Assembly: GCA_004431415.1 (NCBI GenBank)
Contig: QPMI01000420.1
Coordinates: forward strand, 124,001 to 188,000
DNA length: 64,000 nt
Source of the DNA: Cyanophora paradoxa CCMP329
Taxonomy: Eukaryota; Plantae; Glaucophyta
Reading direction: 5' to 3'
A model generated the notes under the pieces. That model saw only the letters and a list, made by a program, of their open reading frames with translations, was not told the DNA's origin and made no database searches. Each line of letters opens with the position of its first letter. The stretch's first letter is position 1. The position numbers and the translations under genes were made by a program. Below are positions 3,001 through 46,626 of this stretch, in pieces.

Positions 3001-3639
3001 GGCGGGGAGGCACCTGCTCCATGCAGGTGCGGCGCTCGGCGAGCTGCCTGTCGGTCTCCAGGGGCCCAATCTTAAGGCCGCGCTGCTTGCCAAGGAAGCC
3101 AGAGGCCTTGCTGCTCGCCAGCGCCCTGCGGCGGCAGCGCAGTCGTCAGGCCGCCGCTGCGGGCGGCGCGGGCGGGCGAGCGATCCGCGGATGGTGGCGC
3201 ACTTCCACCAGTCCTCCTGCTCGTAGTCGCTGATGGGGAAGGAGATCCTGAGCTGCCCCGAGGAGACTGACGTCTGCGACCGGACGCCCCCTGCGCGCAT
3301 CCAAATCAGCACCGCGCGGTTATCTCCCGCCCGCCCGCGCCGCACCGAGGCAGGCGAGTAGCATGCGGTCGACGTCGCGCGCGGCCGAGACCGCGTCCTC
3401 GCGCAGGGGCAGCTTTATGTAGGCCGACTTGGTCAGGGCGAACTTGCTGCGCTCGGGCGCGAGACGGGAGCGCAAGAGTGAGGGGCGGGCGGCGCGGGCG
3501 GACGAGGGCGGCGCACCCGTAGAACCCGCAGACGTTCTGGTTCCGGTCGTGCTTCAGATAGTGGGGGTACACGTAGCGGTAGCCGGAGCGGGAGGCAATG
3601 GTCCCGCGGGCGCCGCTGGCGGGTGAGGCGACCTCGCCG

Positions 3640-3677
<38 letters not shown>

Positions 3678-9129: not shown

Positions 9130-9704
9130 ACGTGACCCCGGAAGCCGCCGAGGCCTTCCCGGAGGCGGTGGCCAAGCTCTGCGCGGCCTACCTCCTTACG
9201 CCTGAGGACCCCCTCTCCCACGAGGAGGCGGAGCTCCTCTCCCGCTGCACTGACACAGCGCCCCCGCACTTGTGTCCCCCGATGCGCGCCCCCTATACGG
9301 TCGGCGAAGTCGAGACATGCCTTAAAGTCATGAATAAGTCAACGGCGCCGGGCGAGGACGGCACCACCGTTAAATTCTATCTAACGTTCTGGGACATCCT
9401 CGGCCCGATAGTCACGGAGAGTTATAACTGCGCACGGGCCCTGGGCACCCTCTCCGAGCGCCAGCGCACGGGCCTGCTCCAACTGCTCTATAAGAAGGGC
9501 GACCGCGATCAGATACAGAACTGGCGCCCGATCACCCTCCTGCAAATCGACCGCCGCCTATTCGGGGCGGTCCTAGCCAAGCGCATTGCACCCGCGTGCC
9601 AGCACACGATCAGCTCAGTGCAGACGGGCTTTATGCAGGGCCGCTGCGGCTTGGACAATGTCTGGCAGATGCAAGCTGTTATCCGTCATGCGGATCGGCA
9701 AGGC
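9130..9704 (+). pseudogene. Truncated LINE reverse transcriptase (N-terminal RT subdomains only)
   Basis: PYTVGEVETCLKVMNKSTAPGEDG..VKFYLTFWDILGP...LLYKKGDRDQIQNWRPITLLQIDRRLFGAVLAKRI...ISSVQTGFMQGR is a typical L1/Tx1 RT start. Similarity stops before D.xKAFD, QG and YADD. Confidence 0.9.
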
Positions 9705-10256
9705 ATGTCGCTCTACCCCGACTCGCTGGCCCTGGCGGCCTCCGAGACCAGCGCGAAGGTCGTCACGGAGCACTGCATCCTCGCACCGCGCCTGGGCGGC
9801 CGCGCCTCGCACCGCCCAGGCCACTCCACCACGGCCCGCCGGCTCAACCGCCTCAGCGCCCTCAACGAGGGCAAGACCAACGAGGAGGCAGCCAAGATCG
9901 CGGCGGAGATCGCCGCCCAGTCCCGCAAGCGCGCGACCGAGCGCTTCGGGCCCGACGCGCGCAAGAAGAGCAAAGGCGGCGCCACCGCCCCCGCCGCCCC
10001 CCCTGCCCCCGCGCCCCACCCCGCCGCCGCCGCTGCCGCGGCAGCCGCCACCGTCGCCCCTGCGCCGATCGCCGCCCCGCGCCCGCCCGGGCCCGGCCCC
10101 GCCTCCGGCCCCGCCCCGGCCAACATCACGCTCGCCAACTACCAGGCCACCCAGAAGCTCCTCGCCGAGCTCACAGCGGCCATCGGCGGCCCCGCCGCCG
10201 TAGAGACCTACCTCGCCGGCCGCCGCGCCGCGGCGGCGGACAACGCAGCGGCGTAG
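9705..10256 (+). CDS. 183-aa ORF of unknown function inside the retroelement, in frame with the RT fragment
   Basis: MSLYPDSLALAASETSAK...NITLANYQATQKLLAELTAAIGGPAAVETYLAG. Strong GC3 codon bias, no introns, not RT-like. Confidence 0.5.
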   Translation: MSLYPDSLALAASETSAKVVTEHCILAPRLGGRASHRPGHSTTARRLNRLSALNEGKTNEEAAKIAAEIAAQSRKRATERFGPDARKKSKGGATAPAAPPAPAPHPAAAAAAAAATVAPAPIAAPRPPGPGPASGPAPANITLANYQATQKLLAELTAAIGGPAAVETYLAGRRAAAADNAAA

Positions 10257-24236: not shown

Positions 24237-24590
24237 GGGTCAACGGAGGTTAAAGTACACCTGACCGTGACGGCGTGGTCAGGTCAGCTCTCGTCACGAA
24301 CGCGCACACGGCGAGCGCGCCCGCGCATACGGCTTCGCCGACATCCACAGCGGCGCTCAAGCCCCAGCATTGCAGACGCAGCGCCGGTAGCGCCGCTCTC
24401 AGCTCATCTCAGCTCATGATCATGTCAACCGGGTCAACGGAGCAACGACACCTGACCGCTACAGCGTGGTCAGGTCAGCCCTCGTCGTGAACGCGCACAG
24501 CGCGACCGCGCCCGCGCATACGGCTTCGCCAACATCCGGCGCTCAAGCCCCGGCACGAAGACGTAGGGTCGGTAGCGCCGGTCTCAGCTC
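24237..24590. repeat. Two imperfect ~165-bp direct repeats, each holding the palindrome ACCTGACC-N10-GGTCAGGT
   Basis: Copies at 24237-24405 and 24431-24590; palindromes at 24259-24284 and 24450-24475. Confidence 0.85.
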
Positions 24591-25542: not shown

Positions 25543-28500
25543 ATGTCGTCGAAGCAGTCGTTCGTCTCGAAGATGGTTCGCAGCGGCCTGCCCGCGCCTC
25601 CCCCTGCCCGCCCTGATTCCGACGCTGCAGCTGAGCTGGCCGAGGGTGGGGCTCGGCCGCGCGCGAGCGCCGGTGGCGCCGGAGGAGGAGGGCCAGCCGC
25701 CGGCGAGGGCGGAGGCGGGGTTGGAAGCGGGGGCGGGGACGCCGGGCACGGCCAGCGAGGCGGAGGTGGAGGAGGAGGACTTGGGGTCGGACCCCGAGCT
25801 CGAGACCGGCGCCTTCGTCCTGCTCGGCCCCGCCTCCATCTCTCCTCTGCCCGGCAGCTCGGAGAGGCGAGCGAGCCCGCGCCCGCGCGTCCGATCGCGA
25901 CCCCGCGCCGCTGACCGTCCGGCGTGCGCCGCAGCCCGAGGGCGCCAGCGCCGGGCGCGGCGGCAGCCGGGTCCGAGGGGGAGGAGGAGGAGGAGTCCTC
26001 GCCCCTGACGCCGCCGAACCTTCCTTCTGGGGACGAAGACCCCGGGTACGCAGATGATTCCGTTTCGAGGCCTTCAAGATCTCAATGACCCCCCCCCCCC
26101 CCCCCCCCCCCGCCCCTACCCCTCCCTCCCTCCCCCCCCCCCCCCCCGGCGGTAGGCTTCGAGTCGAGTCCCCAACGGACGACGACGGTCCGCAACGATC
26201 CTCGTCTTCGCCGGACCTCGATTCCTCCGCGGAAGCGGAAGTTGGGAACCGGTACCCCCCGGGCTGCGCTTGTTCTGAGTTTGCCTTTCTCCGCTGACTT
26301 CGCGACGCGCTCCCCAGCTCGAGCGAGGCGAACGGGGCGGTCGGCTGTGTCCGGTGCGAACATCGTTCGAAATTTCAGCACGCTTGATCACTCGAGAAGT
26401 CTCTTATATCTTCTCCTTCGACAGGCGGCCCGTCGGGGACGCCCCGGAGGCCCCGACGCGTGGCGGGGGCGCCTCGGATCTCTCCGATCCCGGCGAGGCC
26501 GAGGCCCAATTGCAGCCCGCGGCCCCGACCGGGGGCGAAGGCCTCTTCGTCAGGCGCGCTCCGGGGGAAGGGTCCGTCGACCAATTTACACCTTTTTCGC
26601 CGCCGATCACGATCACGACCCTCTTCGCAGCGAGTTCGTCAGCTTGGGCGAGCTCGAGTTCGAAGAGGAGCACGGACCAGAACCGGTTGAACGAGATACC
26701 CGTACGGACGTCTCCTCGCTGTTACCGTGCGGCTATCTCTTGACTCTCGCGATCGTTCCGCCAATTTGAAATTGAAGCGCCTGATGATTACTTATCGAAC
26801 AGTGAACGGTTCGATGCAGCCCGCGACGAGTTCGCGTACCCAGGCGCCCTTCTCGTGGACGCGGAGGGGGAAAAGGAAGACAGGTCAGCTTTCGCGCATT
26901 GATCTAAAATTCAATCTCTTCGCATTTTTCAATCTGCAATCAGGGTTTTCCACGGCGATCGGATCGCAACAGAAGATAACACTTCAATTTTCATCCCTGA
27001 GTGAGTTTTGTATTTCTTTGCGTGCTTGGAACGAATCCTCGAAGTAATACTCTTGCTTTTCTGCAGGGCTGGGCAAGAGCAGCACCGTATCACCCGCTTC
27101 GTGCTCTTCGTCCCCAAGGAGGCAGCCAACGTCGGCAGCAGAGGCTCGCTCTTCGTTCTTGGCAGCACGCCGGAGCTCGGCCAGTGGGATGAGCTGCGCG
27201 TCCGGATGGATCCGGCAGCATCCAACGGGCACGTCTGGGTCTCTCAGCCCGTGCCCATCCCTCGCGGGGAGGCGGTCCGCTACAAGTACGTCTTTGTCCG
27301 CGAGGCCAACCGCCGCCTCGAGCTGGCGTGGGAGGCCGGCGAAGATCGCGCGTGCTCCGACGCGCCCTTCCAATTCGACCTCCAGTTCTGCCCCGAGCGC
27401 AACTCCATTGCAAGCTTCCTCGGGCTCCAGCTGGGCCCCTCGGACCTGTGGAAGCCCTTCCGGGCTTTCTTCGCGGGCATCTGGGCCCTGGACAAGTGGA
27501 CGAGCACCCCGGGGGCCCCCCGAGACGCGCTGTGCACAACGGCGCTTTCCGTCCTCTACGAACAGCGCGTGGTGCGAATTCGCCGATCTATTTAGGCGCC
27601 CCGAGCGGCGAAATTTCTTGCGCTTGACTTCGATTCGCTGCGCGCTGCAGGCAAGCTCGAGCGAGAACAAGGCACACTTCGCTCGAGCTGTCGTGGAGTG
27701 TTTGCCTCCGGACAGCAGCGTCTTCAAGCACATCAGAGAGCATCCCGATGAAATTGATCGGCTTATTTTCGTCGTCGAGCTTTGGAGTAAGGTGCGCATG
27801 CGCATATGCATGCTCTGCGTGTTTGTAGCATGCCGTTCGACCGATCGCGGCCGACGCTGGGCGCCCCGGCCGGCCCTCGCAGATGGAGGAGTGCAGGCCG
27901 CACGCGCTCGCCCGCTTCAACGACCGGCAGCTGGCCTCGATGACGAGTCTTCTGTTCGGGCGCCTCGCGGGCGGCGTCGCGAGATGGGCGCACGCGCAGG
28001 CACCTCGTCGCTCCGCGATCAGCGACGCGGCCTCCAAAGCGGCGGCGGAGGCCCTCGTCTTCCTCTCCGTCGAGCGCTTCAAGCGCGGGTCCTTCGAGTC
28101 GTGGCTCGTCGCTCTGCCCCTCGTCAAGCTCCTCGGCGGAGACGTCGTCCAGCTGGTGTCGCGTGTGACCAGGCATACAGGCGCGGTCGATCGAAATGAG
28201 CGGAATTCCGTCCAGGCCTTCCGCGACGCCGTCAAGTCGGACGCGCTGGCGCGCGTCCTCCCCCGCCTCAGTCGCGACGAGGCGCTCAGCGCGATGCGTG
28301 CTGCGGCTCGGGTCGCTCCCACGTACACGTCGGCTCTCCGTGACGTCATCTTCGTCTGGTGGCCGGGCGTCTCCTCGGCGCTCTTCCCGTTGGGCGTCGC
28401 GCGCGCCGACGATCGCGAGGTCTTCCTCGTCCGCAGCGAGATCGGACACGCGATCGACCGCGGCGTCCACGCGGAGATCCGATCGCCGGAGACGCGCCTC

Positions 28501-31500
28501 GGCGACGTCATCCGCCTCTGGGACTCCATCCCCGACGCGCTCCGCGTGGTGGCGTCGCCCTCCGTCAAGCGCATCCTCGACGAAGCCGCCAAGGACACCG
28601 AGTCCGCGGCCCAGCACCTCGGCGACCGCGAGATCCTTCGGATCGTCGGCAGCGAGGCCCCGCACGCGTCCTTCGCCCCGGTCTTCGCGCTGGAGGGCGG
28701 CGCCGAGCTCCTCCGGAAGCTCCTCGACCTCGCCGTCGCGCGCGGCGCCGACGCAGTCGAAGAGAGCCGCCTTCGCGACCTGCCGGAGCGCGTTGCCGCG
28801 CTCTGCTCGGCAGTCGGCTTCTCCCCTCGCAACCACGCCTCCGGCTTCATCGAGAAGTGGTTCGACGCCGTCTACCCTCGCGACGGTGAGGATGGGCTCG
28901 ACGCGCGCGCGCTGCGCGCTGTCGGGTGACATTGGACTCTGCGCAGGGGCGGGCCGAGATCCGTTGGAGCTCTGCGAAGCGCTGGCCTCGCTCCCCGAGC
29001 CCTTCGCGCCCATCTCGAACGCCGTCCTTGCATCCCTGAAGGAGCGCATCGCCTCCTGTGGCACGTCGACGGTCCTGCAGGCGGCCCGCGGAGCGCGCAC
29101 GAACGCGCCGGCCGTTGCGAGCAACGAAATCGTTTGGGGCGCGTTCGTCGAGGTCTGCGAAGAGCACCTCGGCCGCGAGTGCAGCCGCAACATGCCGGCG
29201 CGGTCCGCCGCGAACCTCAGGAGCCTCCTCGGCGACGCCGCCTCTCCTGTCACGTTTCGCTATCCTGAGTGCGTCCTCGTCCGTTTCTCTGCTGCGCGCG
29301 GTGAAGTCTGCCGCCTGATCTCGACGGCGGTGCGCACGGGCAGGTTCAGGGGTCGCCTCGTCGCGTGCCTCTTCCGCAGCGTCGGCCACGTCGGCTTCAC
29401 GCGCCGCTGCGGACCCAGGCTGCTCTGCCTCCTCGGCGCCAGCGTCTTCTGGCTCGAGGCTCTGCACCACCGCGACGACCCAAACGTGGCGAGCCAGCCG
29501 CTCTTCCAGAAGGGCCTCAGCGTCCTCGTCAGGCTCCGCAACGCCGTCCTGGAGCGCAGGGCCATCGAGGCGCCTCTCTCCGCCCTGTCCGAGGCCGGGA
29601 TGGGCAGGCTGCACGACTGCATGCGGGCGGCCGGCCTCGCGAGCGCCGACTCCGACGACGAGTTCGAGCGGACGATCGACGGCGCCGTGGGCGTCTTCGC
29701 GCGGCTGTGGGCGCAGGTCAACAGCGTGCGCCAGCTGCTCGAGGTGTGGCGCACGGTCCCCCTGAGGGCCGCGCACCGCTTCGAGCTGGAGGGCCTCGTC
29801 GCGCTGGCGGAGCGGGAGAAGGCCCGCCTCAAGGCCCTCGACAGCCCGATCGTCGACCCCGCCGAGCCCCCCCCGCCGCTCCAGGCGCTCGCCGCCGGCC
29901 TCGAGGAGTGCCGGCACCCAGCGTGCGGCACCACCGTCTTCCGCAGCGCCGTCCAGCACGCTTTCCAGGAGTACGTGCTATTTCTGCTCGCACTTCTTCG
30001 CGTCCCCTCTTCTTGCGCCTCTCGCTAACGTCGCTTGTTTGCGAATGCAGGTCGCAGGGGCGGCCTCGCGTTGCGACCTACGACGAGCTCGACGGCGTCG
30101 CCGCGCTCCTGTCAGAAGGCGGGCTCGCAATCGGCGCCGGCGTTCCCGCGGAGCCAGGGCCACAGGACGCCCAGAATGCGCAGGACGGCCAAGGCTTCGT
30201 TGAAAACGCCGCGTGAGCGCCTTCCTGTTGATTTCAATCGCGCCGCGCGCTTCGCCGGCGACTCAAACGCATACTTGGCAGGAGCCTGGTCGACCTGGTG
30301 CCGGGCGTCACCGCTGCAGCCCTCCGCGCGCTGAAGGCCCACGCTGCCGCGCTCGCCCACAACCCGCTCTCGGTTCCGCTGGTCGAGGCGCGCCGCCTGT
30401 GGGGCAGCACGCGCGTCGGCGCCGAGGGCGTGTCGGCGTCGACACGTGTCGGTCCGACCATGCGCGTGGAGGCCGAGCAGGTCCTCTCGCTCGTCGCGGC
30501 GCCTCCGGAGGCCGTGGCGCGCGCGCAGGAGGCGCTCGAGGCGTGCCTGCTTCTTCCCCGGCGCGCCGCGCTCTGGTCCGACCTCGTTCGCTGTGCCGAG
30601 ACGCTCCAGTACCGCTGCAACAAGCGGACCCTCGCCCTGCGGGACGGCTTGGCGGCGCTCGACGCGCAGCCCCGCCCGTCCGCGACGCTCGGGCACGCCG
30701 CCAGGCTCATGGCCGCCACGCTGGGCCCGGTCGAGCGCGTCGCGAGCGACGCGGAGCTGGCGAGGGAGGTCGCCGTCCTCGCGACGCCCCGCGGCGCCGC
30801 CCTCGCGGCGTTCCTCCAGCGCGTCAAGAACGACGACTTCCGCCTGCTCCTGGAGACCTGGGAGGAGATGGCATCCTCCTCCATCCTCCGCCCCGTGCGC
30901 CCCTTCGCGGCGCTTGGTCTGGCGCTCGCTGGATCCGACGCGGCGCGCAGGAGACGTGCCGGGACCTGGAGGCCGTCCGGCAGTACCTCCTGCCGATGTT
31001 CTGCGCGCCGGGCGACGGCAGCGGCCTCGAGGGGCTCGTGGCGCGGCTGTCGGAGCGGCCTGCCGGCCAAGACCGGCCGGGCATGGCGCGCAGGCTCGAG
31101 AACTGCATCACGCAGCTGCACATCGTCGAGAAGAAGTTCGCCAAGGGGACGGAGGTCACCAAGACGGCCGTGCGGGACGCCTGCCGCTCCGGCGTCTACT
31201 GCTTCGACGTCGCCGACGGCGCGGCGACGCTCGCGCTGGAGACGACGGACGCGGCGGGCGGCGGCGCGCAGCGCAGCGACCGGGACGCGGTGGAGGACCT
31301 GCGGCGGCGGGCGATCCTCGTCCGCGGCGACGCCGAGCTCCTCCCGCTCATCGACGCCTTCATCGCCAACGTCGTCCTCGCCGACAGGGTCCGCCGGCCC
31401 CGTTCACGTTTGCCCTTGGCGCCCGGTCGGTTCTCACGCGCGCGCATGCACTCGCGCCGGCCCGCAGGTGCTGGAGCTCCTGACGGAGCTGCAGACCGCG

Positions 31501-34500
31501 TCGGGCGAGTACCGCCGGTGGAAAAGGACGGCGAGCAGCGCGGAGCAGCTGGCGGAGATCAAGGCCGAGCTGGAGGGGCGCCTGGCGGTCTGCCGGGGCG
31601 AGCTCGCGCAGGCCCTGGCGGCGCACGCGTGCCTGGCGTGGTTCGGAGCCAGCCAGCTCTGGACGATGTACGGGCTCCTGGCCTCCTCCGAGCAAGGCCG
31701 GCGCGCCGCCGAGGAGCTCTGCCACTTCGTGCGCTTCTACGAGCCGGCCGTGACCCCGGGCATCGTGCTGGAGGCCTGGGCGGGCCTCGGCGCCGAGCTC
31801 CCGCCGCCCGAGCAGCCGCGCGCCTGCTTCGATCTGCTCGCCGGACTCTTGGGCGCCTGCCAGCAGCGCTCGGGCCGCGCGCCGCGCGCGCTGTTCGACC
31901 CTCCCGCTTTGGCCGCGGCCGGGCGGGGCCACTTCCTGGCGCCGGGCGCCGCCCACGTGGTCCTCGCGGACGGCCCGGGCCGCGTCCCCAGCGCCCTCCT
32001 CGCGCTCTTCGCGAGCAACGGCGTCGGCGGGCGCGGCTGCGTCCCGCCGCGCAGCTCGGTCCTCCTCTGCACGCCCTTCACGGCCCCCGAGGAGATTCGC
32101 CTCTTCTTCCACCGCTGCCGCCTCTCGGCGCTCGCGGGGGAGCCCGACGTCTTCTACGTGGTGCGGCCGTACCGTCTTTCATTCCGCATTCTTTCATTCG
32201 TCCGACGCTCGCGGCCGCCGCCGCCGGCAGGTGCACGGGGAGGAGCTCCCGCACCCCCTGCAGCTGGAGTTCCTGGAGCTGCTGGACGGCCTCGAGGCCG
32301 GCGGGGCCGGCGGCCGCTTCCGCCTGGCGCTCGTCTGCTGCCGCGGGCCGGCCTTCGACGGCTCGCAGCTCTCGCGGGCGCTCGCGGCGTCGACCGTCCC
32401 CTCGGCGGGCCTCGCCCTCGAGGAGGCGCGCGCCGTCGTCGCGCAGCTCCTCCCGGACGCCCGTCTCGTCACCTCGGAGCGCGCCGGCCTCGGCAAGACG
32501 GCGCTCGTCCGCCAGCAGTGCGAGGAGATGGGGCGCGAGCTCGCGTACCTGCCCGTCTACGCCGACGACGACGGCCCCGAGCTCGTCGCGCGCCTCCAGA
32601 CGAGGGGCCTCGAGGCGGGGCGGCACGCCCTCCACGTCGACGTGACGCCCGTGGGCCGCCCCGAGGCCCTCAACCTCCTCCTCCTCGAGCTGCTCCTCTT
32701 CAGGGCCGTCTGCGCCCAGGGCCGCGTCTTCCACGTCCCCGACGACGTGCCCATCTTCGTGGAGCTCCCGAACATGCCCACCGACCGCCTCGGGCGCGCG
32801 CTCTCTGTCTGCGCGCTGCTGCGCGAGGAGCGCCTCGCCTGGAGACTGGACCGCCTCGCCGTCAGCATGGAGCCCGCCAGCGCCGTCCAGGTCGTCTGCA
32901 GGTGCCGCGCCGCCCGCCCCCGAGCCGCTCGCTCGCGGCGTCGACGACGTCGATGTGACTCGGTCGTGCAGGTACCTCGACGCGCTGGACGCGACGGACC
33001 CGCAGCGGAGCATCGAGAAGCGGGACATCGCGCGCGACTCGGAGGACAGGGTCGACGCGGACCGCTGCCGCGCGCTGCTGAAGGCGCACTTCTTTGACAA
33101 CCGGGCGGTGGCGCCGGCGGCGAGCTTCTCGGCCCTAAACACCTTCCTCACAATCCTGGCGCGCGACCTCGACCTCTTCTCCAGCTGCCCGTTCTTCGCC
33201 ACGCGGCACGTGCAGTTCCCCAAGGCCCGCTCCACCTGCGTGGCGGCGCTGGTCAACGCGGCGGCGGAGCTCGCCAGCTCGCACGACACGGCGGCGAGGC
33301 AGCAGGCGCCCGCCGGCGGCGGCGGCGGCGGCGACGAGGTGGACGAGAACGTGCTGCGGCACTCGCGGATCGTGCAGTGGGAGGCGCGCAACCACCTCCT
33401 CGTCGCGTTCCACCCGGACGGCTCCTTCACGTCCCTCTACCGCCGCGCGGAGCAGGTCCCGCCGGCGCTGAAGGCGCTCCTCGACAGCCAGACGTGGGGC
33501 GCGAGCGCCGGCAACGGCCTCCTCCAGTACCACAAGATGGACTCCACGTCGCTCCTGGAAGTCCTCGTGCGGCTGGTCCCCGGCAGCGAGGGCAAGCCCC
33601 TGCCCGACCTCGGGAGCTACGTCCTCACGGCGGACAACATGCTCAAGATGATCCTGATCTGGACGCGCGTCGACGCCGGCGTTCCCGTCGTCGTGTCCGG
33701 CGACACGGGATGCGGGAAGACGAGCCTTGTGCGCCCCTCGAGCCCCGTTCTTGCTCGCGGTTCGGTCAGCGCGGCGAGGCTGACGCGGGCGGCAGATGCG
33801 GGCGGCGTCCAAGGTGTTCGGGTTCGAGCTGCAGACGCTCAGCTGCCACGCGGGGACGACGCGCGCGGAGATCCACGCGGCCATCGACGCCGCCGAGGCC
33901 CTCGCCGCGCTCGACGCAGGCGAAGGCGACGGCGGCGGGGACAAGAAGACGGGGAAGAATCCCCCCGTCGTCCTCTTCCTGGACGAGATCAACACGTGCG
34001 GCCACATGGGCCTCATCGGCGAGATGCTCTGCCAGCGCACGATCGGGGGGCGGCCCATCCCGCCCCGCGTCCGCTTCGTGGCGGCGTGCAACCCGTACAA
34101 GAAGCGGCCGGCGCGGGCGGCGGCGTCGCCGGCCGTCGGGATCGACCTCGGCCGCAGCGACGCGCTCTCCAAGCTCGTGTACCGCGTGCACCCGCTCCCG
34201 GACCGCCTCGCCGATTTCGTCATGGAATTCGGCGCCCTGGACGACGCCGACGAGGCGCGCTACGTGCTGGCCATGCTGCAGCGCAGCGAGTTCGCGCGGC
34301 TGGTGCCCCAGGGCAGCAGGCTGTCCCTGGAGCTCCTCGCTGCGCTGCTGGTCGCCTCGCAGCGCTTCCTGAAGGGCAAGGAGGGCGCGGCGGCCGTCAG
34401 CCTGCGCGACGTCTCGCGCTGCATTTACCTCATGGCCTGCTTCGCTCGGCTGCTGCTGGAGCGGCCACCGCCGCCGCTCGGCTCGGACCGCGCCCTGCGG

Positions 34501-37500
34501 CTTCCGGGCGCGGCAGGCCTGCCGCTGGAGGCCCGCGCCGCGCTCCTCGCGCTCGCGCACTGCTACCACTGCCGCCTCACGAGCCGCGAGGACCGCAAGG
34601 AGTACCGGGAGGCGCTCGCCGGCGTCCTCGCGGCGCGCGGCTTCTGCCCGAAGCAGGGGGCGGCCGGCGCCGTGCTCGCGCAGATCGGGGACGCGCGGTT
34701 GGCGCAGCTCTTCGCCTCGCGGGCGGCCCTCACCGAGGGGGACATCCTGGCGGTCATCCGCGAGGAGCAGATGGACTACGTGCGCCGCATGGTTGACGCC
34801 CCAGAGGGCACCGCCTTCAACGAGGCGCGCCCGCCCGCCCGCCCGCCCGCCCGATCCATTCGATTCTGTATTTGTTCGAAGAATCTGACGCTGCCGGCAG
34901 GCGCTGCGGGAGAACGTGTTCATGCTCCTCGTCTGCATCATCCACAGCCTCCCGGTCATGCTCGTGGGCAAGGTGCCGCCGCGCCCTCCGGATCCTAGCA
35001 CGTCCCCGATCGCAAGCTGACGCCGGCGGGGCGGGGCGGGGGCAGCCCGGCTCGAGCAAGTCGCTGGCGCTGCAGCTCATCTTCCAGCACCTGCGGGGGC
35101 AGTACAGCAAGGACCCTTTCTTCCAGCGCCTCCCCGAGGTCCGGCCCGGGCCCCGCCCCCTCCGAAACCAAACCTCCGACCGACGTCTTCGCCGCCGCCG
35201 CCACAGGTCTTCTTCGTGCCGTACCAGGGCTCCCCGCAGTCGACCTCGGAGGGCGTCCTGCAGGTCTTCGACCGCGCCGAGCGCCTCGCCGCCGAGCTCC
35301 AGGCTGGCTCGGCCGGCGCCGGGGCGCCGCCGCCGGGGGCGCGCGTGCGGGGCCTGCCGGCGGCGGTCGTGGTGGTGGTCATGGACGAGATCGGCCTCGC
35401 GGACACCTCCCCCCACAACCCGCTCAAAGTCCTGCACAGCAAGCTCGACCCGCGGTCCGCTCCCCAGGCCTAAGCTTTCCGCCCGGCTGCCGCGCAACGC
35501 CCACCAACGCCGCGCCGCGCAGGAGAGGGTGCGGGGCGACGGAGGCGGGCGGGATCGTGCCCGACCGGCACATCGCCTTCGTCGGCATCAGCAACTACCT
35601 GATCGACGCCTCCAAGGTCGCCGGCCGCTTCCGCGCGCCGTCCCTGCGCGGCGCGGCCCCTAACGGTCGGTCGCGCCGCCTGCTCCGCAGAGTAACCGCG
35701 TGATCCAGAGCTGCCGGCCGGACCCGGACGCGGGGGACCTGACGGAGACGTTCGAGGCGATCGCGGAGGCGGCGCCGGCCTCGCAGCGGGGCCGCCTGCT
35801 CGACGGCGAGCGCCTCGCGGGGCTCGCGGGGGCGTACCTCGAGCTGCAGGAGGCGATGAAGGGCACCGTCTACCGCAACTTCTTCGGCCTCCGCGACGTC
35901 TACAGGTGCGGCCCGTCCCCGGCACGCACCGACGCGGCGCTCGCTCGCTCGCGCTCTGAGCGGCGCGCGCGGCGCCCGCGATCGCAGCCTCGTCAAGTCG
36001 TTGGCGAAGCAGCCGGGGCAGTCCCTGCCCGAGACGGCGGCGACGGTGGCGGAGGCCGTCCGCCGCAACTTCGGGGGCCTCTCGGAGGGTCCCGGCGCGA
36101 CCGAGACCGTCGTCCTCCGCTTCCTCGAGCGCCTCCGCCTGCTCGATGCCGGCTTCGGCCCCGTGCTCGAGCTCCCGCCGCCGCGGCCCGTGCTCGATCG
36201 CATCGCGGAGGGCGCGCTGGACAGCCGGGCGCGGCACGTGCTGGTCGTCTCTGACTGCGAGGCGGCCCCCGAGATCGTCCGCCGGCGGCTCGCGGCGGAG
36301 CTCGCCCGCGAGGCTTCGCGCCGGCGCGTGCGGCTCTTCAGGGGCAGCAGCTTCCCCGGGGACACCGACTCGGACGAGTTCGACTGCCGCCAGCTCAGCG
36401 ACATCACCATGGCGATGGAGGTGCGCGACGAGCAGCGCAGATCTAACTCTCTCGTGCTCACTCCGTCCCCAGGTGGAGAGCGTCGTCGTGCTGCAGAACC
36501 TGGCCGTGTACGGATCGCTCTACGACATCCTCAACGGCAACTACGCCCCGGTGCGCGCGGCCGTGCCCGTCCCGGCCCCCCGCGCGGCTCTTCGGCTCAC
36601 GGGCGGGCCCGGGGCGGCGGGCGCGGGCGCGAGCAGGTGGGGGACCGGCGCAACTTCCGCGTTGGGAGGGGCCCGCACTCCGTCAACTGTCACGTGGACG
36701 AGAACGCGCGCATCGTCGCCGTCGTGCACCCCAAAGATGTCCCCCACCAGGGTCCGCCCCCCCGCCCAGCCGGCCCGGTCGGCCCGCCCCTGAGAGCGCG
36801 CCGCGCGCGCAGACCCGCCGTTCCTCAACCGCTTCGAGAAGATCGTGATGACGTACGGCGACCTGCTCTCGCCGGCGCTGCGCCGCGTCGCCGACGAGCT
36901 GCGCGGCTTCGTCGCCGGCGCCGCGTCGGTCCCGGGCTCGCCCTTCTCGGCGGAGCACCCCGAGCTGACCTTCTGCGGCCTGCACGAGGGCGCCCTTGAC
37001 GCGGTCGCCCTCCGCCACGCCGGCCTGCCCGAGGCCGAGGCGCTCGCGGCCGCCCGCGCCGACCTCTGCCGCACGCTCACCGAGGACGCGGCGGTGCGCC
37101 TCCGGGCCTGCCGGCTGCCGGCCGACGAGGCGGCGCGCGCGGCGGCGCTCTACGCCGCGCAGGAGCACCGCGAGCTCGGCCGCTTGGCGGAGCGCGAGGT
37201 CGCCGAGTGGGAGGCCCGCGAGGCCGGCGGCGCCGGCGCCGGGCCGGGGCCGGCCTGGCGGCCCTCGTGCAGACCTTTTCGCAGCCGAAGGCCCGCCTCG
37301 CGCTGCCGGAGGCCCTCCGCGCGCGGACCCTCAGCCTGGCCAGCATCCGCCGCGCCGCTGAGCTGACCGCCGAGCTCAAGGCGTACTTCGCTGCAGGCGA
37401 CCCGCACCGCCTCCTCGTCGTCGAGTGCCGCGCCGCGCCCGACGCCGCGACGATCCCCGAGGCCCGCGCCGCCATCGACCAGCACCGCGAGGAGTACGCC

Positions 37501-40500
37501 GCCGCGCGGGCCTCGGCCGCCGCCGCCGCCGCCGCCGCCGCCCCGCCCAAGCACGTCGTGATGGTCGTGCACGTCGACCGGGCGGCGCCGTACGCGTGCC
37601 GCCTGCTGCCCTTCGCGGACTGGCGCGTGGCGACGGTCGACTCGCTGGAGGCCGTCTCCGTCGACCCGCAGTCGGCCCTCCGGCTCGACGTCGATGCCCT
37701 CACGCGGCGGCCCCTCCGCGAGGCCCTCCGCTCGCCCCCGGGCTCCCAGGCGCGCGCCCGCCCGCCCGCCCGCCCGCCCGCCCGCCCGCCCGCACGCTCT
37801 GCTCTGCTCTGCCTTCCTCACGCGGGCCGCGCGGGCGCGCAGCTGTACGAGGCGCTCTTCTTCGGGGCGCTGCAGCGCGCGCTCGCGTGCCTCCGCTACG
37901 GGCGCGTCGCGGCGGGACGGAGGCGTGCGCCGAGTACGCCGGCCGCGTCGTCGCCGGCGTGCGCGCCTCGCCCGAGGCGCGCGACTTCCTCAAGGGCGCC
38001 GTGCTGGACCGGCTCAGGGACGGCGGGGCGCGCCCGGGGGCCTGGGCCCACGCCGTCGCCACGAAGCGCGAGGTGCCCGCCCGCCTGCCTTCCGCCCCCG
38101 CCCCCGCCCCCGCGTCGACGCCTTACGCCGCCGGCGCAGTCGCTGGTGGTCTGCTCGTCGTACGCGGGGGCGCTGCTGGAGTCGCTTCGCGAGCGCGTCA
38201 GCGAGGCGCTGGCCAAGCTCCTCTTCTTCCTCGAGCGGGAGCAGCTGTTGGGGACGCTCCTCGCGCAGCCGGCGCGCTGCGTCGCCCGCCTCGCCGAGGT
38301 CGGCGGCGAGGTCGCCGTCGACGTCCGCGGCTTCGACGCCGGCACGGACGCCCCGCAGCCCGGCGGCTACGCCGTCGAGGGGCCCCTCCCCGCGCGGCGC
38401 GCCCCCCTCTCCCGCGCCGTCTACCGCCGCGCCGAGGAGTACCGCGACGGCTTCCTCCTGCGCCTCGAGGCGGCGGCGGAGGCGGCCCGCGCCGGTGGCG
38501 GGACCCCGCCCGACGCGGCGGCGCTCGTGGCGGAGCTGCGGGAGAGCATCGCGCGGGACCAGCACCTCCGCTGGTTCCTCTTCGAGCGCGGCGCGGACGA
38601 GTACCTCGACGACTTCGCCCTCTCCGTGCGCCGCCCCGCGGAACCGGCCCGGCCGAAATCCGAGCTGAATACTGACGCCCCGGCGCGCAGGTGGCGCTCG
38701 AGCAGCCTGACTTCGCCTCGCTCGAGGCGGCGCGCGGGGCCGTGCGGGCCCTCCTCGCCCGGCTGCACCCGGCGCCCTTCCGCGACGTCCTCGACGTGCA
38801 CGCCGCCTGGTGGGCCAGCGCCCGCGAGGCCCGCGCCTGCCTACGGATGCTCGCCGCCCTCTCCGCCCTCGACCCGGCCGCCCTCGAGCGCCCCGGCCCG
38901 GCGCCGGCCTCCGCCGCCCCCGCCGCCCCCGCCGAGGACGTCGTCCGCGCGCACATCGCCGGCCTCCTCTGCCGCGCCGTCGTCGAGCAGCCGTGCGCGG
39001 CGGACGGCGCCTGGCTGCGCGCCGCGCGCGCCGCGATGGCGCTCGTCGCCGGGGCGGCTTCTTCGCCGCGCGGCCGCCGCGCGCCTTCCGCGTCCTCCAG
39101 GTCTGCGTCGACGTCGCCGCCTGCGCCGGCGAGGCGCACCCGGCCGCCGTGCGGCGCGTGGTCGAGCTCGCCGCGTCGTGCGGCGGGCCGGAGGGCGACG
39201 AGATCCTCACCAGCGCCCCCTTCCTGGAGGGCGTCCTCGCCCTCCTCGACGAACACGCCCCGCCCGCAGCTGCAGCCGCAGCCGCAGCCGCAGCCGCAGC
39301 CGAAGCCGCCGACGGCGACGCCGTTGCCTCAGCAGCAGCAGCAGCGGTGGTGGAGTCTGTGGCGGCGGTGCGGCGCGTGGAGGGCAACCTGCTCCGCCGC
39401 TGCGTCGCAGCCGCGGACGACCCGCGCGAGTCGGCGGAGCTCGTCGTGCTCGTCGCGGGGCGCGTCCTGCGCCCCGGCGGGGGCCCCCTCGGCTTCTCCG
39501 CCGACGCCCGCCGCGTCCTCTCGGCCCTCTTCGACGCGCAGGAGCGGGGCTACCAGTCCGACTCGGCGCTCCTCGGCCCCTGCGGGGACGCCCTGCGCGA
39601 CCCGGCGCTCGCCGCCCGCCTGCCCGTCTTCGCCGCCCTCGACGCCGAGCTCGCCAAGGCCGCGGAGGGCGGCGAGGCCTGGGCCTTCGTGGGGGACGCC
39701 CTCGCCTATGGGCCCTTCTCCCGCCTGCGCGCCGAGCACCTCGCCGCCGGCAGTGCCGAGGCGACCGAGGCGGCGGCGGCGCTGGGCGCCGCGGCCGCGC
39801 TGCTGGGATCGGGACGGCGGGGCCGCTGACGACGGTGCTGGCTGCGACGTACGCGCGGGCCTGCCTGGCGCGCGCCGCGGAGTACCTCGCGCCCTCCGAC
39901 GCCGGCGTGGCGGCGGGCCCCGGCGGCCTCAGCGAGCACCTCCTGGCCGCCCTCGGGGCCCTTGGCGAGGCGGGGGGCGAGCCCGCGGATGCGCTGCGGG
40001 TCTGCCTCGTGCAGCAGATCCGCCGCGCGGCCGGCGGGGCGCCCCTCGCGCAGCTCGCCGAGCGGTGCAGGGGCGAGCTTGCGCGGCGGGCGCCCCTCCG
40101 CTGGCTTGGGGACCTGCCCTGGGGCGAGCCGAACGAGGCGCCCCTCGACTACAACCCCTTCGCCGCCGACGTGGGCTTCGGCGAGGCGGAGGCGGACCTG
40201 AAGGAGCTGCTCTGGCGCCGCGACGCCGGTCCCGTGGCGCGCCGGCTCGCCGGCGGCTCCCCCGCCGAGCCCCACGCCGCCGTGCTGGCCGCCGCCTGGC
40301 GCCTCCTGCTCCCGCGCGCCGCGCGGCAGCCCTCCGCCGGCGACCGCGAGGCGGCAGCGGCCCTCGCGCGCTGCGCCGCTGCCGGGCGCCCGCAGGACTC
40401 GGCCCTCCTGGCCGTGCTGGGCGCGGCGGCCGCGGGCGCCGGCGCCGGCGGGCCGCGCCTGCCGCGGCCGTGCCCGCTGGACCTCGCGCCCGGCTGCAGC

Positions 40501-43500
40501 GCGGCGAGCGTGCACGTCGCCGCGCTCTTCGCCCGCGTGGCGGCGCTGCTGGGCGCGCTGCCGGCCGGCGCCTCGCCCTACCATGCCCTCTTCGCGGACC
40601 CAGCAGGGGCGCTGCGGGAGCAGCTCCTGCCGGGGGTCCTCGCCTGCCCAACCCTCGTCACCTTCTTCGAGTTGAAGCAGCAGAAGAGCGGCGAGGGGGA
40701 GATCCGCCACTGGCGCGTCTACCGCCACGCCGCCTGCGGATTCGAGTGCGCCCTTTTGGTTCCTTTGGGTTCACGCGGCAGCGCGCGCCGAACGCTGACT
40801 CGGTGGAGCACAGATACACCGTGGACGGGTGCGGCCAGAACGTCACGCCGGATAAGTGCCCGCGGTGCCCCGGGGCGGACATCGGCGGGACTGACCACAA
40901 GACGGCCCCCGGCAACATCGACGTGACGGCCGAGCGCCTGCGGCCTCTGCCCGGCCTGCACGCCGAGAATCCCGCCTTCCTCCGCTGCAGCGAGTACGCG
41001 GACCGCGGCCTCAACGCCACGACCTTCCGCGCCCTGCACGCCATCGCGTACCTGGCGGCCGCCGCCGCCGCCGAGTCGGGCCGCCTCTCGGAGGAGGACG
41101 GGCGGGGCTGCTTCCACGCCGGCGACGCGGCGAACTGCCTTCGCGTCGTGGAGGTCGACCTCGAGGTGCTCGCCGCGGCGCTGGGCGTGGGCCTGGAGGA
41201 GGCCTGCCTCGTGCTCCACGCCGCCCTCCGCGCCTTCGCCGGGGACCTCTTCGCCGGCCGCGCCGCCTTCGCCGCCGGCGCGGTCGTCGCCGCGGCCGGC
41301 GCGGCGCGGCGGATGCGGAGGAGCGGCGCCGCCGCTTCGAGGCGGAGTTCGAGGCGAGGTACCTGGCGCCGGCGCTGGCGGGGGCGCCGCCGCCGCCGCC
41401 GCGCGCCTCGTCGCCGAGTGCCGCCCGCCGCCGTGCGACGCCTCCGCCCGCTTCGAGGCGGCCGTCCTCTGCCAGTGGGACGCGGCGGCCCCGCGGCCCC
41501 TCGCCCGCCTGCTCGACCCCATCGCCTTCGCCAGCGCCGCCGCCCTCCGCGCCCACTTCCTCGCGGACTCGGTCAACGCCGAGCGGCACCCGGCGCTCGC
41601 GCTCCTCCTGAGGCACGAGGAGGACCTCCGGCGGGCGCGGGCGCTCCTGCCCGTCGTCGAGTTCGCGCGGCTCGTCCAGCGGCGCCTGGAGGGCCGCCTG
41701 CGCCGCGCCGAGGCGCAGCAGCTCACCGTGCGCGAGTTCCTCGAGCGCGTCGGCGAGCCCGAGGCGGCGCGGGCCCTCTTCGAGCGCTGCCGGGCGGCCC
41801 TCCGTCTGCTCGCGGCGGACCACGCGGCGCGCCCCATCCGCGTCGGCTGCCGCGAGCTGAACCTGAGCGGCGTCGAGGCGATCGAGACCGAGTCCAAGGT
41901 CGCCTTCTTTGTCGCCGAGCGCGCCGAGGGCGCCGACGCCACCGAGGCGGGGTGCGCGGCGAGCATCCATCCTACCGCGCCCAGAGCCTCAGCTGACGGC
42001 CGCGCCGCCGCAGGTCGGTCGTGTGCGCCGTGCTCGACATCGTCGCCCAGGCGCACAACCGCGCGCTCTCCGAGGCGCGGGCCCTCGCGGAGAGCTGCCC
42101 CGCGCTGGCCTTCCTGCTGCCGGCCCCGGCGGGCGCGCTGCTGGCGCAGGAGGCGGCCGCCGGGGACCTCTGCGCGCCCGAGGCCAGCGACGCGCTCGTG
42201 CAGGCGCACTCCACGCCGCTCGTGTCGCTCGAGGGCGCCGGCCGCTCCGCCCTCGCCTACCAGCTCGGCTCCCTCGAGGCCGACCTCGCCCAGGTGCCCG
42301 CGCCGCCGCCCGCCCCGCCCCGCCCCGCGCGCTCACGGGCCGCAGGCCGCGTTCGCGGGCGGCTGCCCATCCGCACGGACCCCTTCGAGCCGGGCCGGGC
42401 GCTCCTCGTCCCCTTCTCGCACCACCTCGAGCTCGCGCCGGAGCGGCTGCGCATCCCCCTCGAGGTCGGCGCCCGCGTCGAGCAGGAGCGCATCCAGCCG
42501 GCCATCGCCCGCGCCATCAAGGTGCCCCGCCCGCCCGCCCCGCGCCCCGGCCCGCGGCAGCCAACCGCGTCCGCCGCTTGCGAGCGCAGGCCTCGATCAG
42601 GGTGATCACGCCCACCCGCCCCGCGCGCCCGCGCCCCGCCGCAGCCAACCGCGACCGCCGCGGCCGCTCGCGGGCGCAGGCCTCGGGCGCCCTGCGCGAG
42701 CACTTGGACCAGCTCCTGCCCTCTCTCAACGTCGTCCTGGCGACGGTCCGCCCGGCCCCCGCCCGGCCCCCCGCGCGCCCGCTCTCTCCTCGGTTCGATT
42801 TGCTTCGCGCAGCTGATCCGGGCGTCGCGGTGGCCGGAGCACGAGCGCCTCTCGGACTTTGCGCGGCACTTCGACGCGCCCTCGACGGAGGCGTGGCTCC
42901 TGCGGCACGACGTGCTCCGCCCGCTCTGCCTCAAGCACGCCTGCGACCTCTACGACGTCGTCGAGTCCGTCCACACCGACGTGCGCCCCCGATTCCCGAA
43001 TTTCAGCGGCGCGCGCGCCGTTTACGCCCGCGCAGGTCGTGGTCGACATCCTGCGCGACGATCGCGCATTCTGCGAGGAGCTCCCGCCCGACGCCCGCGA
43101 GCTGATCCGCGCGGGCCTGGAGGGGCGCGCGGTGCCCCTGGGGCGGCTGGCGCTGGCGGCGGCGCGCCTCCTGTCGCGCGTCCTGCGGGACACGCGCGAG
43201 GGGCAGGCGCGCCTCGGGCTCCGCGTGCAGCTGACCCGCGAGGAGCTCTGGGTGACGCCCCGCGAGGGGTCGGCCCCGGGCGAGGAGGAGCTCGCGCGGG
43301 TCGTGCACGGCGGCCTGACCCTCGCGCACGCCCGCGCCCTCCACCTCTTCCTCCAGGGCCTCCTCGCCGTGCGCGCCTTTCAGCTTCCCGCAGGCCAAGC
43401 CGGCCGGCCCGGGCCCCTGTCGCTGACTGGGGTGAGCAGGACGTCGACGGAGGTGCTGGCCACGGGCCCGGGGGCCAGGGACCCCCACCCGACGGGTACC

Positions 43501-43583
43501 GCACGGCGGCGGATCGGCTCAAGCTTTCGCGCCCGACCGCCCCCGCCGTGGCCGAGCGCCCGGGCGCCCGGCGCTTCGAGTGA
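25543..43583 (+). CDS. RNF213/mysterin-like giant AAA+ ATPase / RZ-finger E3 ligase; many introns and several apparent frameshifts
   Basis: RNF213-family motifs appear in order: VTSERAGLGKT; YVLTADNMLKMILIWTRVDAGVPVVVSGDTGCGKTSL; VLFLDEINT...FVAACNPYKK; LVYRVHPLP; VSLRDVSRC; FNEALRENVFMLLVCI...VGKPGSSKSL; YQGSPQSTSEG; VVMDEIGLADTSPHNPLKVLH; FVGISNY.IDASK; NFFGLRDVYSLVK; VRRNFGG; GSSFPGD; YGSLYDILNGNY; FLNRFEK; then an RZ finger and C-terminal domain. Stop TGA at 43581-43583; start codon less certain. Confidence 0.92.
27085..27360 (+). other. CBM20-type carbohydrate-binding module of the RNF213-like protein
   Basis: LFVLGSTPELGQWD...MDP....HVW...VPIPRGEAVRYKYV......AWEAGEDR fits the CBM20 consensus (V.GS...LG.W, YKY, WE.G.NR). 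Confidence 0.85.
40712..40918 (+). other. RZ finger of the RNF213-like protein, split by intron 40746-40813
   Basis: Spliced: WRVYRHAACGFEYTVDGCGQNVTPDKCPRCPGADIGGTDHKTAPGN, compared with the RZ pattern C-x3-H-x6-CG-x7-C-x2-C-x3-IGG-x2-H. Confidence 0.85.
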
Positions 43584-44131: not shown

Positions 44132-46626
44132 CTAGGATGTCGACTCAGTACCAATGTTCGATTTTGAAGCCAAATTAGCGAGCTGTGCAGCATACGCCCT
44201 CTGAACACAAGCCTTGAAATGTGCAGAAATTCTAACCTTATGAGCAATCTTGCCCTGATACATCAGAAGAAAGGACTGAAGGGTGAGGCAGAAAAGAGAA
44301 GGAGGCGATGTTCTATAGCTATTTGGTGGTACCTGTGCTGACGCATATATATGCTGCCTTGCAATTAAGCTTAAGATTGCTATACCTTGTTGCACGGGGC
44401 GACTTCCACAGGCGTGTCTTTTGCTTCATTTCTAGATCGATATCTCTCTCTCGTGGGACTGGTGCTGGAAGCAAAGGGGATTGCCTCAGAAAAAAGTGCT
44501 CATGGAATAAACCGTGGCTGCAATTCCACAGTCCTGTGCGGCCGCCATCGCAGCATTGTCTGTAAAATTAAACGTATTCTGTTAGCTCGAGCTCTGGAAT
44601 ATATATAGAGATCGAGCGAATTTGAAGAGCACCGGAAATAACTCGGTTTGTCATCTTGGTGCCACTCAAAACATATATTCGGAGAATTGTAAATGTCGTT
44701 TAGTTTCTTGAAACGATTCTCAGTGATATCCAAAAGCTTCCACGCAGTGCTGATTCTAGACTCACGTTTGCTAACCTCTCGTTGGACAAAAGATGGAGCG
44801 CGAGGTTCACCGGATCCGGATCCGGAGCGCATGAATTGCTTGTAATGAATGCACCGGTACAGAGGTCGAAAACGCTCAAGCGCATGATCATGATCAGGGA
44901 GTTCTTGGAACGGTTTGTGTGCACGAAGATATGCTATATCCGCGTCAACACCAGTTTTCACAAGCGATATCATCTGCGCCAAGGACGAAACCGATCGTTA
45001 ATGTAAAAGCAATGGAGTATATAAATTATCATTAAGCTTTTAATTTTTGTACACCTCAGCTTTCAAGGCATCTTTCGTCTCTTGATCCAGTTTCGAGTGT
45101 GCATATAGAACGGCCAGCGAAAGACACTTGCTAAAGAATACTCGTTTCTCTAAAATGTCTTGGATTCCATACACTGAACGGCTCTCATAGTGCTTGGTCA
45201 AGTAACGGGGGCCATTAGCGCAAATTTTTGCGGCTTGTTGCTTGATTGCATCTATGTGTTGCGGAGACAAACGTATAGTAAATTGAGGCTTCGATCCGCT
45301 GTACTCTCTTAAAAGAAGCCACTTTGTGACGGGATCAAGCTCGGAGGTCTTGAATTCATTGCCCTGCAATGCACGTTAATAATGCAATGTAGCGAGTGCA
45401 ATGGTTAAGCTTGTTACAATTGGAGTTCACACCACTAGTACTTTAAGTTCTTGTTCGGCTTCTTCAGCGAGCTGCCGAAGAGCAGCGCTTTTCTGGTCAC
45501 ATCCCGTATAGATTCGAGCCACTTCAAGTAGTCCAGTTGTCATCGTGACTGCAATACTGACTGTTTCGCTTTGCGTCAAGTACATGGTCAGCTTAAACAC
45601 GTGAAAATGAGCTCGAGAACGATTTCAACTGCGAACCTGCACTTCAGCTTTAGCTTGAATTCAGCTGAAGAGCTAGTGTCCTCTGTGTGCACGTCGGCCG
45701 AGTGACGCCGTTTCTTCATCTGGGTACTGGCCATGGCCATGGTATAGAGCTTTAGGCGGGCACAGCGCCCGGCGGCCATGTCGGGCTGCAGCGCTGCAGC
45801 ACCTCTCAGAATGTCCATCGATATCCTGATCGATATCATGATCTCGATCTGGTTCTCCGGGGGCAAGTGCAGCTGCAGGTGCAGCTAGGGCTGGATCTGG
45901 CCATGGCTGCGCGAAAACCAATCTTAATTATATAAGTGAGCAAAATATATAAGGACGATATGCAGATAAAAATATATATAACGCGCTAATACTGCAGCTG
46001 CAGCTGCGTTATACGAAGGTCGAAAGCACACCTGCACGTGCACAGCTGCAGCTAGCGCTGCAGGCCCGGGGGACGTCGACGTGCACACTGGTACCGAATT
46101 CGAACTGGATCCGCGGCCGAAGCTGAGATAATCAATGTCTGCAATCACGCGCGAGCACAAGCGTTAGCAGAACAGACTGTTAACGTTACAATTGCATTGG
46201 AGGTAGCGCGTGCGTTGTACCTGCACATGCTTCGGATCCGAATTCGAACCCAGATTGAGATCTAGAGGTGCTGCAATGCTCAAGCTCGAGCTCTTGATCA
46301 CGATCACGACCATGATCATGCATATGATCATGATCATGATCATGATCATGATCGACGCAGCTGACGTCGACTCCGGATCCAGCTCTGAGCTGCTCTAGAT
46401 TAAGATCTATCGGAGCTGCAGCTGATCGCACGTGCACACTGCTGCTGATCTCAAGGTGAACATCCCGAACATGGCGATATAAGTGGCATCGTTTACGCGC
46501 ATGGTGTCCGCAAACACTGCAGCTAAAATGCTGCGGCGGACCGTGGTTGCAAGTGGGCGGGCACTGGATGATTTCTCTTTCGACGCTAGATGGGACAGCT
46601 GCCTGGGCTGGGCGTCCTCGAGGCAT
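44132..46626 (-). CDS. Putative multi-exon protein with AT-hook-like start, C2H2 zinc finger, His/Asp repeat and unknown C-terminal domain
   Basis: MPRGRP...FSCSVCGHHARKRCHLYRHVRDVH...DHDHDHDHMHDH. Downstream exons (GNEFKTSELDPVTKWLLL; MISLVKTGVDADIAYLRAHKPF; RQCCDGGRTGLWNCSHG) join through GT-AG introns to TAG at 44132. The link across 45.6-45.9 kb is uncertain. Confidence 0.55.
46288..46352. repeat. (ATGATC)n-type hexanucleotide microsatellite encoding the His/Asp run
   Basis: catgatcatgcatatgatcatgatcatgatcatgatcatgatc. Confidence 0.8.

Follow-up and report, generated by a model that had tools for sequence, protein, structure and literature searches.

RNF213 (mysterin), a protein of interest in Moyamoya and in immunity, leaves two questions open: the role of its RING and the ligand of its CBM20 module. 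An engineered deletion of the RING leaves auto-ubiquitination by mouse RNF213 intact (PMC7311170), and it is the RZ finger, not the RING, that is required to ubiquitylate bacteria (PMC11549300). In mammals, the RZ cysteine serves as the nucleophile and the RZ histidine as the base (10.1101/2021.05.10.443411). Here we describe a related gene without a RING at positions 25543-43583 (forward strand) of a 64-kb window, that is, the whole stretch of DNA analysed, from contig QPMI01000420.1 of the glaucophyte Cyanophora paradoxa CCMP329. We read it as an expressed member of an old, pan-eukaryotic family of RING-less RNF213-like proteins, of which Cyanophora has four or more, and regard cell-autonomous defence as its likeliest job; for this reading we put the probability at roughly 0.55. 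Judged by homology and conserved residues, the product is most likely an ATP-gated, RZ-only ubiquitin ligase. Three matches support the family assignment, which had been proposed in a preliminary description of this DNA made from the letters alone: an AAA exon (33796-34824) whose significant matches in a PDB search were to RNF213 alone (E 1.7e-19), a profile of the ubiquitin-ligase (E3) scaffold (E 4e-35) and the RZ finger itself (Pfam PF20173, E 2.6e-8).

Gene structure and expression

The region 25543-43583 consists of GC-rich exons alternating with short introns. Donors and acceptors were placed by consensus and phases were checked exon by exon, giving a model of 39 exons and about 5,060 codons with a start at 25543, a stop at 43581-43583 and consistent phases throughout. 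Introns have a median length of 68 nucleotides (nt); 35 are GT-AG and three are GC-AG. Searches used single exons of the spliced model or database proteins, and the fold of the E3 module was taken from the paralogue P0001. The features of the gene, all on the forward strand, are as follows.

25543-43583, forward: RNF213-like gene (phase check; tblastn of paralogues; splicing in RNA contigs over 36.7-42.6 kb)
25543-27000, forward: exons 1-8, an acidic, low-complexity N-terminal region of about 285 amino acids (aa), with exon limits by consensus only
27083-27382, forward: CBM20 module with a complete site-1 triad (Pfam; alignment to 1ac0 and 7czj; AlphaFold model and Foldseek)
27400-32160, forward: helical stalk, then a linker and the first part of the AAA region (homologue matches)
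32471-32500, forward: P-loop TSERAGLGKT, the presumed AAA2 nucleotide site (invariance, profile and position)
33696-33722, forward: AAA3 Walker A, SGDTGCGKT (sequence)
33973-33987, forward: AAA3 Walker B, LFLDE (sequence; PDB match of the exon)
34967-35063, forward: AAA4 Walker A, GK (34967-34972) and PGSSKS (35046-35063), interrupted by the intron 34973-35045
35375-35389, forward: AAA4 Walker B, VVMDE, followed by NPLKVLH (sequence; paralogue tblastn)
38140-40719, forward: helical E3 scaffold of back, shell and core (paralogue matches; family profile; paralogue fold)
40720-40916, forward: RZ finger, with the RNA-confirmed intron 40746-40813 inside it (Pfam; RNA joint; alignment of relatives)
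42014-43368, forward: region of the C-terminal domain, with homology to family C-termini (homologue comparison)

Public runs of Cyanophora paradoxa contain 37-73% of the words sampled from the window. Contigs from three runs of two studies lack the introns at about 38073-38139, 38626-38690, 40746-40813 and 41952-42013 and are therefore RNA; on this gene, the read-contig evidence spans 36.7-42.6 kb. About seven single bases, mostly G in runs of G, are absent from the assembly within the coding region 36700-42600. The RNA contigs restore six of them (a G behind 37913, 39050 and 39810, one base in 36965-37502 and two in 40814-41950), and an unspliced, DNA-type run restores the seventh, a G behind 42356. 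Once these seven gaps are allowed, no exon contains an internal stop. The 3' third of the gene is transcribed, spliced and intact. We also considered a pseudogene and ruled it out, the frameshifts in 36.7-42.6 kb being bases that the assembly lacks according to the read contigs. Other genes of the Cyanophora genome may look broken through similar single-base gaps.

Paralogues from the same genome align collinearly with the gene by tblastn over 30951-42971. For the 5' part, we infer that the CBM20 exon and the AAA exons lie on one transcript because phases, intron size, codon bias and homologue spacing all fit. The introns between the CBM20 exon and AAA3 measure 56-91 nt with compatible phases, codon bias supports the model frame in every exon from CBM20 to AAA3, and no AATAAA occurs between these exons. 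The distance from CBM20 to the AAA3 Walker A is about 1,960 aa, compared with 1,813-2,031 aa in fungal and animal relatives. The 18 kb gene of the preliminary description is supported by a model with fitting phases and, for the existence of a transcript, by RNA splicing at four introns.

Two details of the model allow more than one form. An in-frame stretch of 75 nt at 29269-29343 is either intron or exon. In the intron 42522-42679 the 3' part is duplicated: two 47-nt acceptor segments that resemble each other lie 84 nt apart, and splicing may use an alternative acceptor there or include a mini-exon of 12 nt (42590-42601).

Domain content and the absence of a RING

No RING was found between the AAA core and the RZ finger. 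A regular-expression search of 36800-40750 returned neither a C3HC4 nor a half pattern in any forward frame, and the correct-frame E3 pieces gave no Pfam RING at E<=1; as a positive control, the same expression detected the RING of the neighbouring gene at 21712-23960. A RING concealed in another frame, or lost through mis-splicing, was ruled out for 36.8-40.75 kb by the same regular-expression and Pfam searches. An E3 profile built from 27 RING-less modules matched mammalian RNF213 in two pieces flanking the RING (mouse 3559-3843, and human from about 4061 on, with human offsets calculated by hand); the RING of mouse RNF213 occupies 3941-3999 (PMC7311170). At this site the non-animal E3 has about 77 profile positions, compared with about 165 residues in the mammalian chain. 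In the window gene, the animal RING site maps to about 39053-39400, where helices common to the paralogues and a copy-specific poly-Ala stretch are found. The E3 exons match the Cyanophora paralogues, and the predicted E3 module of P0001, the closest of them (predicted local distance difference test score 82) is helical up to the RZ finger with RNF213 as its top match (Foldseek E 2.2e-5; VIA-align Z 13.5, root mean square deviation 13.0, 570 aligned). A Z of 13.5 at a deviation of 13.0 is near the chance level for helical models, and the sequence profile is the stronger evidence.

The RZ finger would be coordinated by H 40726, C 40735, C 40857 and C 40866, and an alignment of relatives indicates that the catalytic C 40830 and the general-base H 40896 are kept. 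Its predicted ligands thus read H-x2-C...C-x2-C, compared with C-x3-H...C-x2-C in animals, while fungal members start Cys, Cys. The His-then-Cys order of the first two ligands is common to all four Cyanophora copies.

The stalk segment 28949-29968 matches the paralogue P0151 and the segment 30951-31388 matches 58 homologues; the stalk exon found no useful match in the Atlas. In the P-loop TSERAGLGKT the S, G, G and K are invariant in 14 homologues, and a profile of the region aligns to mouse RNF213 1863-2042 (E 0.001). From its position, we infer that this is the AAA2 site. No acidic Walker B pair follows it (the sequence reads ALHVDV), which fits an AAA2 that binds ATP without hydrolysis, as in RNF213 (PMC7311170). 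Downstream, AAA3 and AAA4 each carry a Walker A and a Walker B. By score to RNF213 in the PDB, the AAA regions of relatives reach about 360 bits (a Cyanophora paralogue), 355-374 bits (Cymbomonas) and about 420 bits (a RING-less Branchiostoma protein).

The CBM20 module was detected in the exon 27067-27571 (Pfam PF00686, E 4.7e-10). Modelled with AlphaFold, it forms a beta-sandwich, and its leading Foldseek matches are CBM20-bearing proteins; the fold matches include laforin, STBD1 and the glucoamylase CBM20. Alignment with the glucoamylase and laforin modules places the site-1 triad at the W of LGQW, the K of RYKY and the W of AWE. Both marks of a starch-binding domain, the predicted beta-sandwich and the W/K/W residues, are therefore present, and the predicted starch-binding site is complete; among 13 RNF213-type CBM20 modules, only the window copy has it so. 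With the one-transcript model, the module stands N-terminal to the stalk, as in the family. The preliminary description had listed a well-formed CBM20, an ordered RNF213 AAA+ series with two intact Walker A/B pairs, an RZ finger and a C-terminal domain in a protein lacking a RING, and each of these was recovered, the second Walker A being split by an intron and the putative C-terminal domain being recognised by homology within the family.

Spread of the RING-less form

The best of 1,478 matches to the gene was a Cyanophora paradoxa protein, followed by two further C. paradoxa paralogues; the three are tig00000219_g19493, tig00020892_g14920 and tig00000093_g3504. They resemble the window gene in being collinear from the stalk to the C-terminus, in their His-first RZ ligands and in lacking a RING. 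They are about 30-50% identical to it in most exons, have no poly-Ala insert, and their models begin within the stalk and show no CBM20, although the N-termini may be incomplete. A search with the E3 region returned these three paralogues as its sole matches, and a search for RING-bearing relatives with the RZ region recovered the query alone. The four Cyanophora copies form one clade in a tree of exon 20 (95/80), with the window copy on the longest branch of the four (1.26); GC-driven composition was flagged for this tree, and its taxa include no vertebrate.

Outside Cyanophora, the lack of a RING is widespread. Among 168 homologues of at least 3,000 aa, none has a RING, 31 have an RZ finger and nine have a CBM20-like module, in a sample biased towards the AAA4 motif type of the window gene that may miss RING-bearing non-animal members. 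A Cymbomonas protein of the mouse-like AAA4 motif type is likewise without a RING, and so was every non-vertebrate relative fetched. CBM20, AAA and RZ occur together without a RING in Ambispora, Gigaspora and Cetraspora, and RZ without a RING in Cymbomonas, Mesostigma, Epipyxis, Racocetra, Andalucia and Naegleria, so that RZ-only members are found in green algae, a chrysophyte, a jakobid and Naegleria. Metagenomic loci (n=80) again gave no RING, with RZ in at least 18 and CBM20 plus RZ in three. In the Atlas, RZ alone is present in 23 of the 30 nearest clusters, and RING with RZ was seen solely in clusters labelled Mollusca and Chordata, a lead only. On these sequences, the RING-less state appears to be the common one for the RNF213-like family outside animals, fungi and protists included. 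The preliminary description had implied that the form is rare; this did not survive the comparison, and the window gene is a good representative of what appears to be an ancient form, not a singular case. Our search of the literature, which left subscription titles largely outside its reach, found no paper on the non-animal RNF213-like family.

Because RING plus RZ was seen only in animal clusters, we think it rather likely, given a biased sample, that RNF213 began in early eukaryotes as a RING-less, RZ-only, glycan-directed ligase and that the RING is a later animal insertion. That RING-less versions exist naturally in a glaucophyte, green algae, fungi, a stramenopile and excavates suggests that the core of the protein was from early on the RZ machine, to which animals later added the RING. 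If defence is the job, ubiquitin defence of the RNF213 type would be far older than animals and present in the plant lineage.

A bacterial or viral origin was considered and rejected. No relative was found in viral contigs, and prokaryotic genomes gave one match, the locus L083 (CAXXVR010000009.1, 1549678-1570172), on a 1.7-Mb contig in a 'Desulfobacterium' metagenome-assembled genome. This locus encodes an RNF213-like AAA region and RZ at 22% GC. Under the bacterial code no open reading frame reaches 150 aa, and under the ciliate code a frame of 1,223 codons is free of stops; the contig is most likely eukaryotic and was misbinned with the bacterial genome.

Two further observations concern the family at large. 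Corals, bivalves and amphioxus have many RNF213-like proteins of 4,000-4,900 aa with intact Walker motifs and neither RING nor RZ (P0003, P0016, P0018, P0170 and many from ENA/Logan), many of them apparently single-exon; these are possibly a ligase-free animal subfamily. Domain fusions (P0242, P0036, P0153) add a protein kinase in Diversispora, NHL repeats in Cymbomonas and a duplicated AAA block in Diversispora, the last a possible gene-model artefact.

Proposed function and comparison with known systems

Beyond the directly observed gene structure, transcription of its 3' third, motifs, fold and family spread, the catalysis, ATP gating and target proposed here are drawn from animal RNF213. 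Nucleotide binding and hydrolysis in the dynein-like ring, with AAA2 binding and AAA3 and AAA4 hydrolysing, would gate the E3 module. An E2 charged with ubiquitin would dock on the C-terminal domain and pass the ubiquitin to the RZ cysteine, and the RZ histidine would help to transfer it to a target surface engaged with the help of the N-terminal CBM20 and stalk. The intruder, or its compartment, would thereby be coated with ubiquitin for disposal. The RZ-only ligase anticipated by the preliminary description agrees with the conserved RZ Cys and His and the missing RING. Defence is our best guess for the role because of the function of animal RNF213 and the four-copy expansion; lineage-specific expansion with diverged copies is the usual pattern for defence genes.

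Several points weigh against this reading. The immune role is extrapolated from the animal protein, and we know of no bacterial pathogen that lives inside Cyanophora cells. In AAA4 the motif is of another type (QGS...NPLKVLH) than in mouse RNF213 (QCS...MPLK), and orthology to vertebrate RNF213 is not implied. The RZ zinc ligands (HCCC) differ from the tested CHCC motif. Ahead of the finger, the helix that binds ubiquitin in animals (10.1101/2025.10.14.682297) has diverged in the window copy, and for the E2-docking part a profile of the C-terminal domain gave no significant match in the PDB to the solved RNF213 domain. Finally, the glycan sensing proposed in the preliminary description is unproven even for human RNF213, whose CBM20 has no known ligand (PMC11549300).

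The CBM20 suggests the main alternative, though one that we consider unlikely, namely starch housekeeping, with CBM20 binding cytosolic starch and the RZ finger ubiquitylating glucan or granule proteins for turnover in the manner of laforin-malin or HOIL-1. It would explain the full W/K/W site of the window copy and the fold matches to laforin, STBD1 and glucoamylase; Cyanophora starch is cytosolic (PMC13666283), and glycogen is ubiquitinated in cells (PMC13345935). However, known glucan ligases work without a 5,000-aa ATPase machine, point mutants of the human CBM20 are recruited to pathogens unaffected (PMC11549300), and the paralogue models show no CBM20, though possibly because they are N-terminally shortened. 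The preliminary description had set the gene beside cytosolic starch and a walled plastid. The cytosolic starch stands, but the CBM20 holds the same position in fungal and animal relatives and is most simply inherited, with no tie to starch or plastid needed, because CBM20-AAA-RZ proteins also occur in Ambispora, Gigaspora and Cetraspora and the Cyanophora genome has at least three more RING-less copies. The window CBM20 is small and foldable and keeps the canonical sugar-binding residues, so that a ligand test should be easier than with the human domain. We are more doubtful still that the Cyanophora copy is specialised, through a truly starch-binding CBM20 and the HCCC finger, for the ubiquitylation of alpha-glucan surfaces, whether on its own cytosolic starch or on an intruder; a RING partner encoded by the adjacent gene might then take part.

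Organelle surveillance, in which the protein would mark damaged muroplasts or mitochondria that expose bacterial-type or inner molecules, seems improbable to us. The Cyanophora plastid retains a peptidoglycan wall, and human RNF213 is reported to ubiquitinate damaged mitochondria (10.64898/2026.09.21.752888); but fungi without plastids have the same architecture, and no sequence feature points to the plastid.

The neighbourhood raises a further alternative, through a gene lying head-to-head with the RNF213-like gene about 1.6 kb upstream.

21712-23960, reverse: coiled-coil protein with a C-terminal C3HC4 RING at about 21765-21960, 5' end uncertain (Pfam zf-C3HC4_3, E 5e-8)

In a two-part ligase, this neighbour would supply the RING in trans, co-expressed from the shared upstream region. 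Its RING is real and is the sole full RING pattern in the window, but eukaryotic genomes hold many RING genes, those beside the different Cyanophora copies appear to differ in kind, and 83 fetched loci (1.04 Mb, many short) gave no full RING and one half-RING, in a UBR-type neighbour. With the RING dispensable in the animal enzyme, we find this arrangement very improbable, and a functional link between the two genes is unproven.

Still less credible is a ligase-dead ATPase scaffold with swapped RZ ligands and a diverged C-terminal domain, like the RZ-less coral and mollusc relatives, or a CBM20 in a separate gene: few long relatives keep an RZ, the window copy has the longest branch of the Cyanophora four and read evidence is confined to the 3' part, with none over 25.5-36.7 kb, but four potential ligands and the catalytic Cys and His are kept, all four copies share the swap, and the introns, phases, codon bias and lack of AATAAA between CBM20 and AAA3 fit a single gene.

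Elsewhere in the window, the interval between the divergent genes holds, at 24257-24590, a repeated 90-nt element, its two copies 89% alike and 191 apart, and a 32-nt pair. A weak reverse-transcriptase match at 8811-10256 on the forward strand (Pfam RVT_1, E 7.5e-6) marks a retroelement remnant, and a second Cys/His-rich, half-RING-like pattern lies at 7570 on the reverse strand. Downstream of the RNF213-like gene are a palindromic (ATCATG)n microsatellite (46270-46361) and, at 48585-50400 on the forward strand, a stretch that reads by eye like a gene of the F-box/leucine-rich-repeat type, with no Pfam match.

Among known systems, laforin-malin and glucan ubiquitination by HOIL-1 likewise pair a CBM20 or glucan-directed module with ubiquitin transfer, but they use RING or RING-between-RING ligase folds and have no AAA motor, and the likeness is functional only. 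ZNFX1, an RZ-finger helicase, shares a transthiolating RZ finger able to modify non-protein targets; it is a superfamily 1 helicase sensor, not a dynein-like AAA ring, and is without a CBM20. Mammalian RNF213 (PDB 8S24, 6TAX, 7OIK) has the same order of CBM20, stalk, AAA ring, E3 scaffold and RZ in about 5,000 aa, followed by a C-terminal domain with a putative counterpart in the window gene, with active-type Walker pairs in AAA3 and AAA4, apparently the same RZ catalytic Cys and His, and a similar spacing of CBM20 and AAA3 (378 to K2426 in human). Unlike it, the window gene has no RING, an HCCC in place of a CHCC finger, another AAA4 motif type and a CBM20 with a canonical starch site 1. The AAA core, the AAA2 P-loop without Walker B, the E3 scaffold, the RZ and the CBM20 place the gene, by its sequence, in the RNF213-like family in the wide sense, and it is not a strict vertebrate RNF213 because there is no RING in the E3-back and the zinc ligands differ. 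In arbuscular mycorrhizal fungi, the RNF213-like proteins (Ambispora leptoticha CAG8481554.1, Gigaspora margarita CAG8534868.1 and Cetraspora pellucida CAG8517981.1), so far gene models only, share the RING-less CBM20-AAA-RZ architecture, the AAA4 motif type and an extension after the CBM20 core, and differ in their CCCC ligands, incomplete CBM20 site 1 and separate clade in the tree. With this layout already in public fungal gene models, the single gene is not exceptional; specific to Cyanophora are the His/Cys swap in the RZ finger (4/4 copies) and, in the window copy, the complete CBM20 starch site and the head-to-head RING gene.

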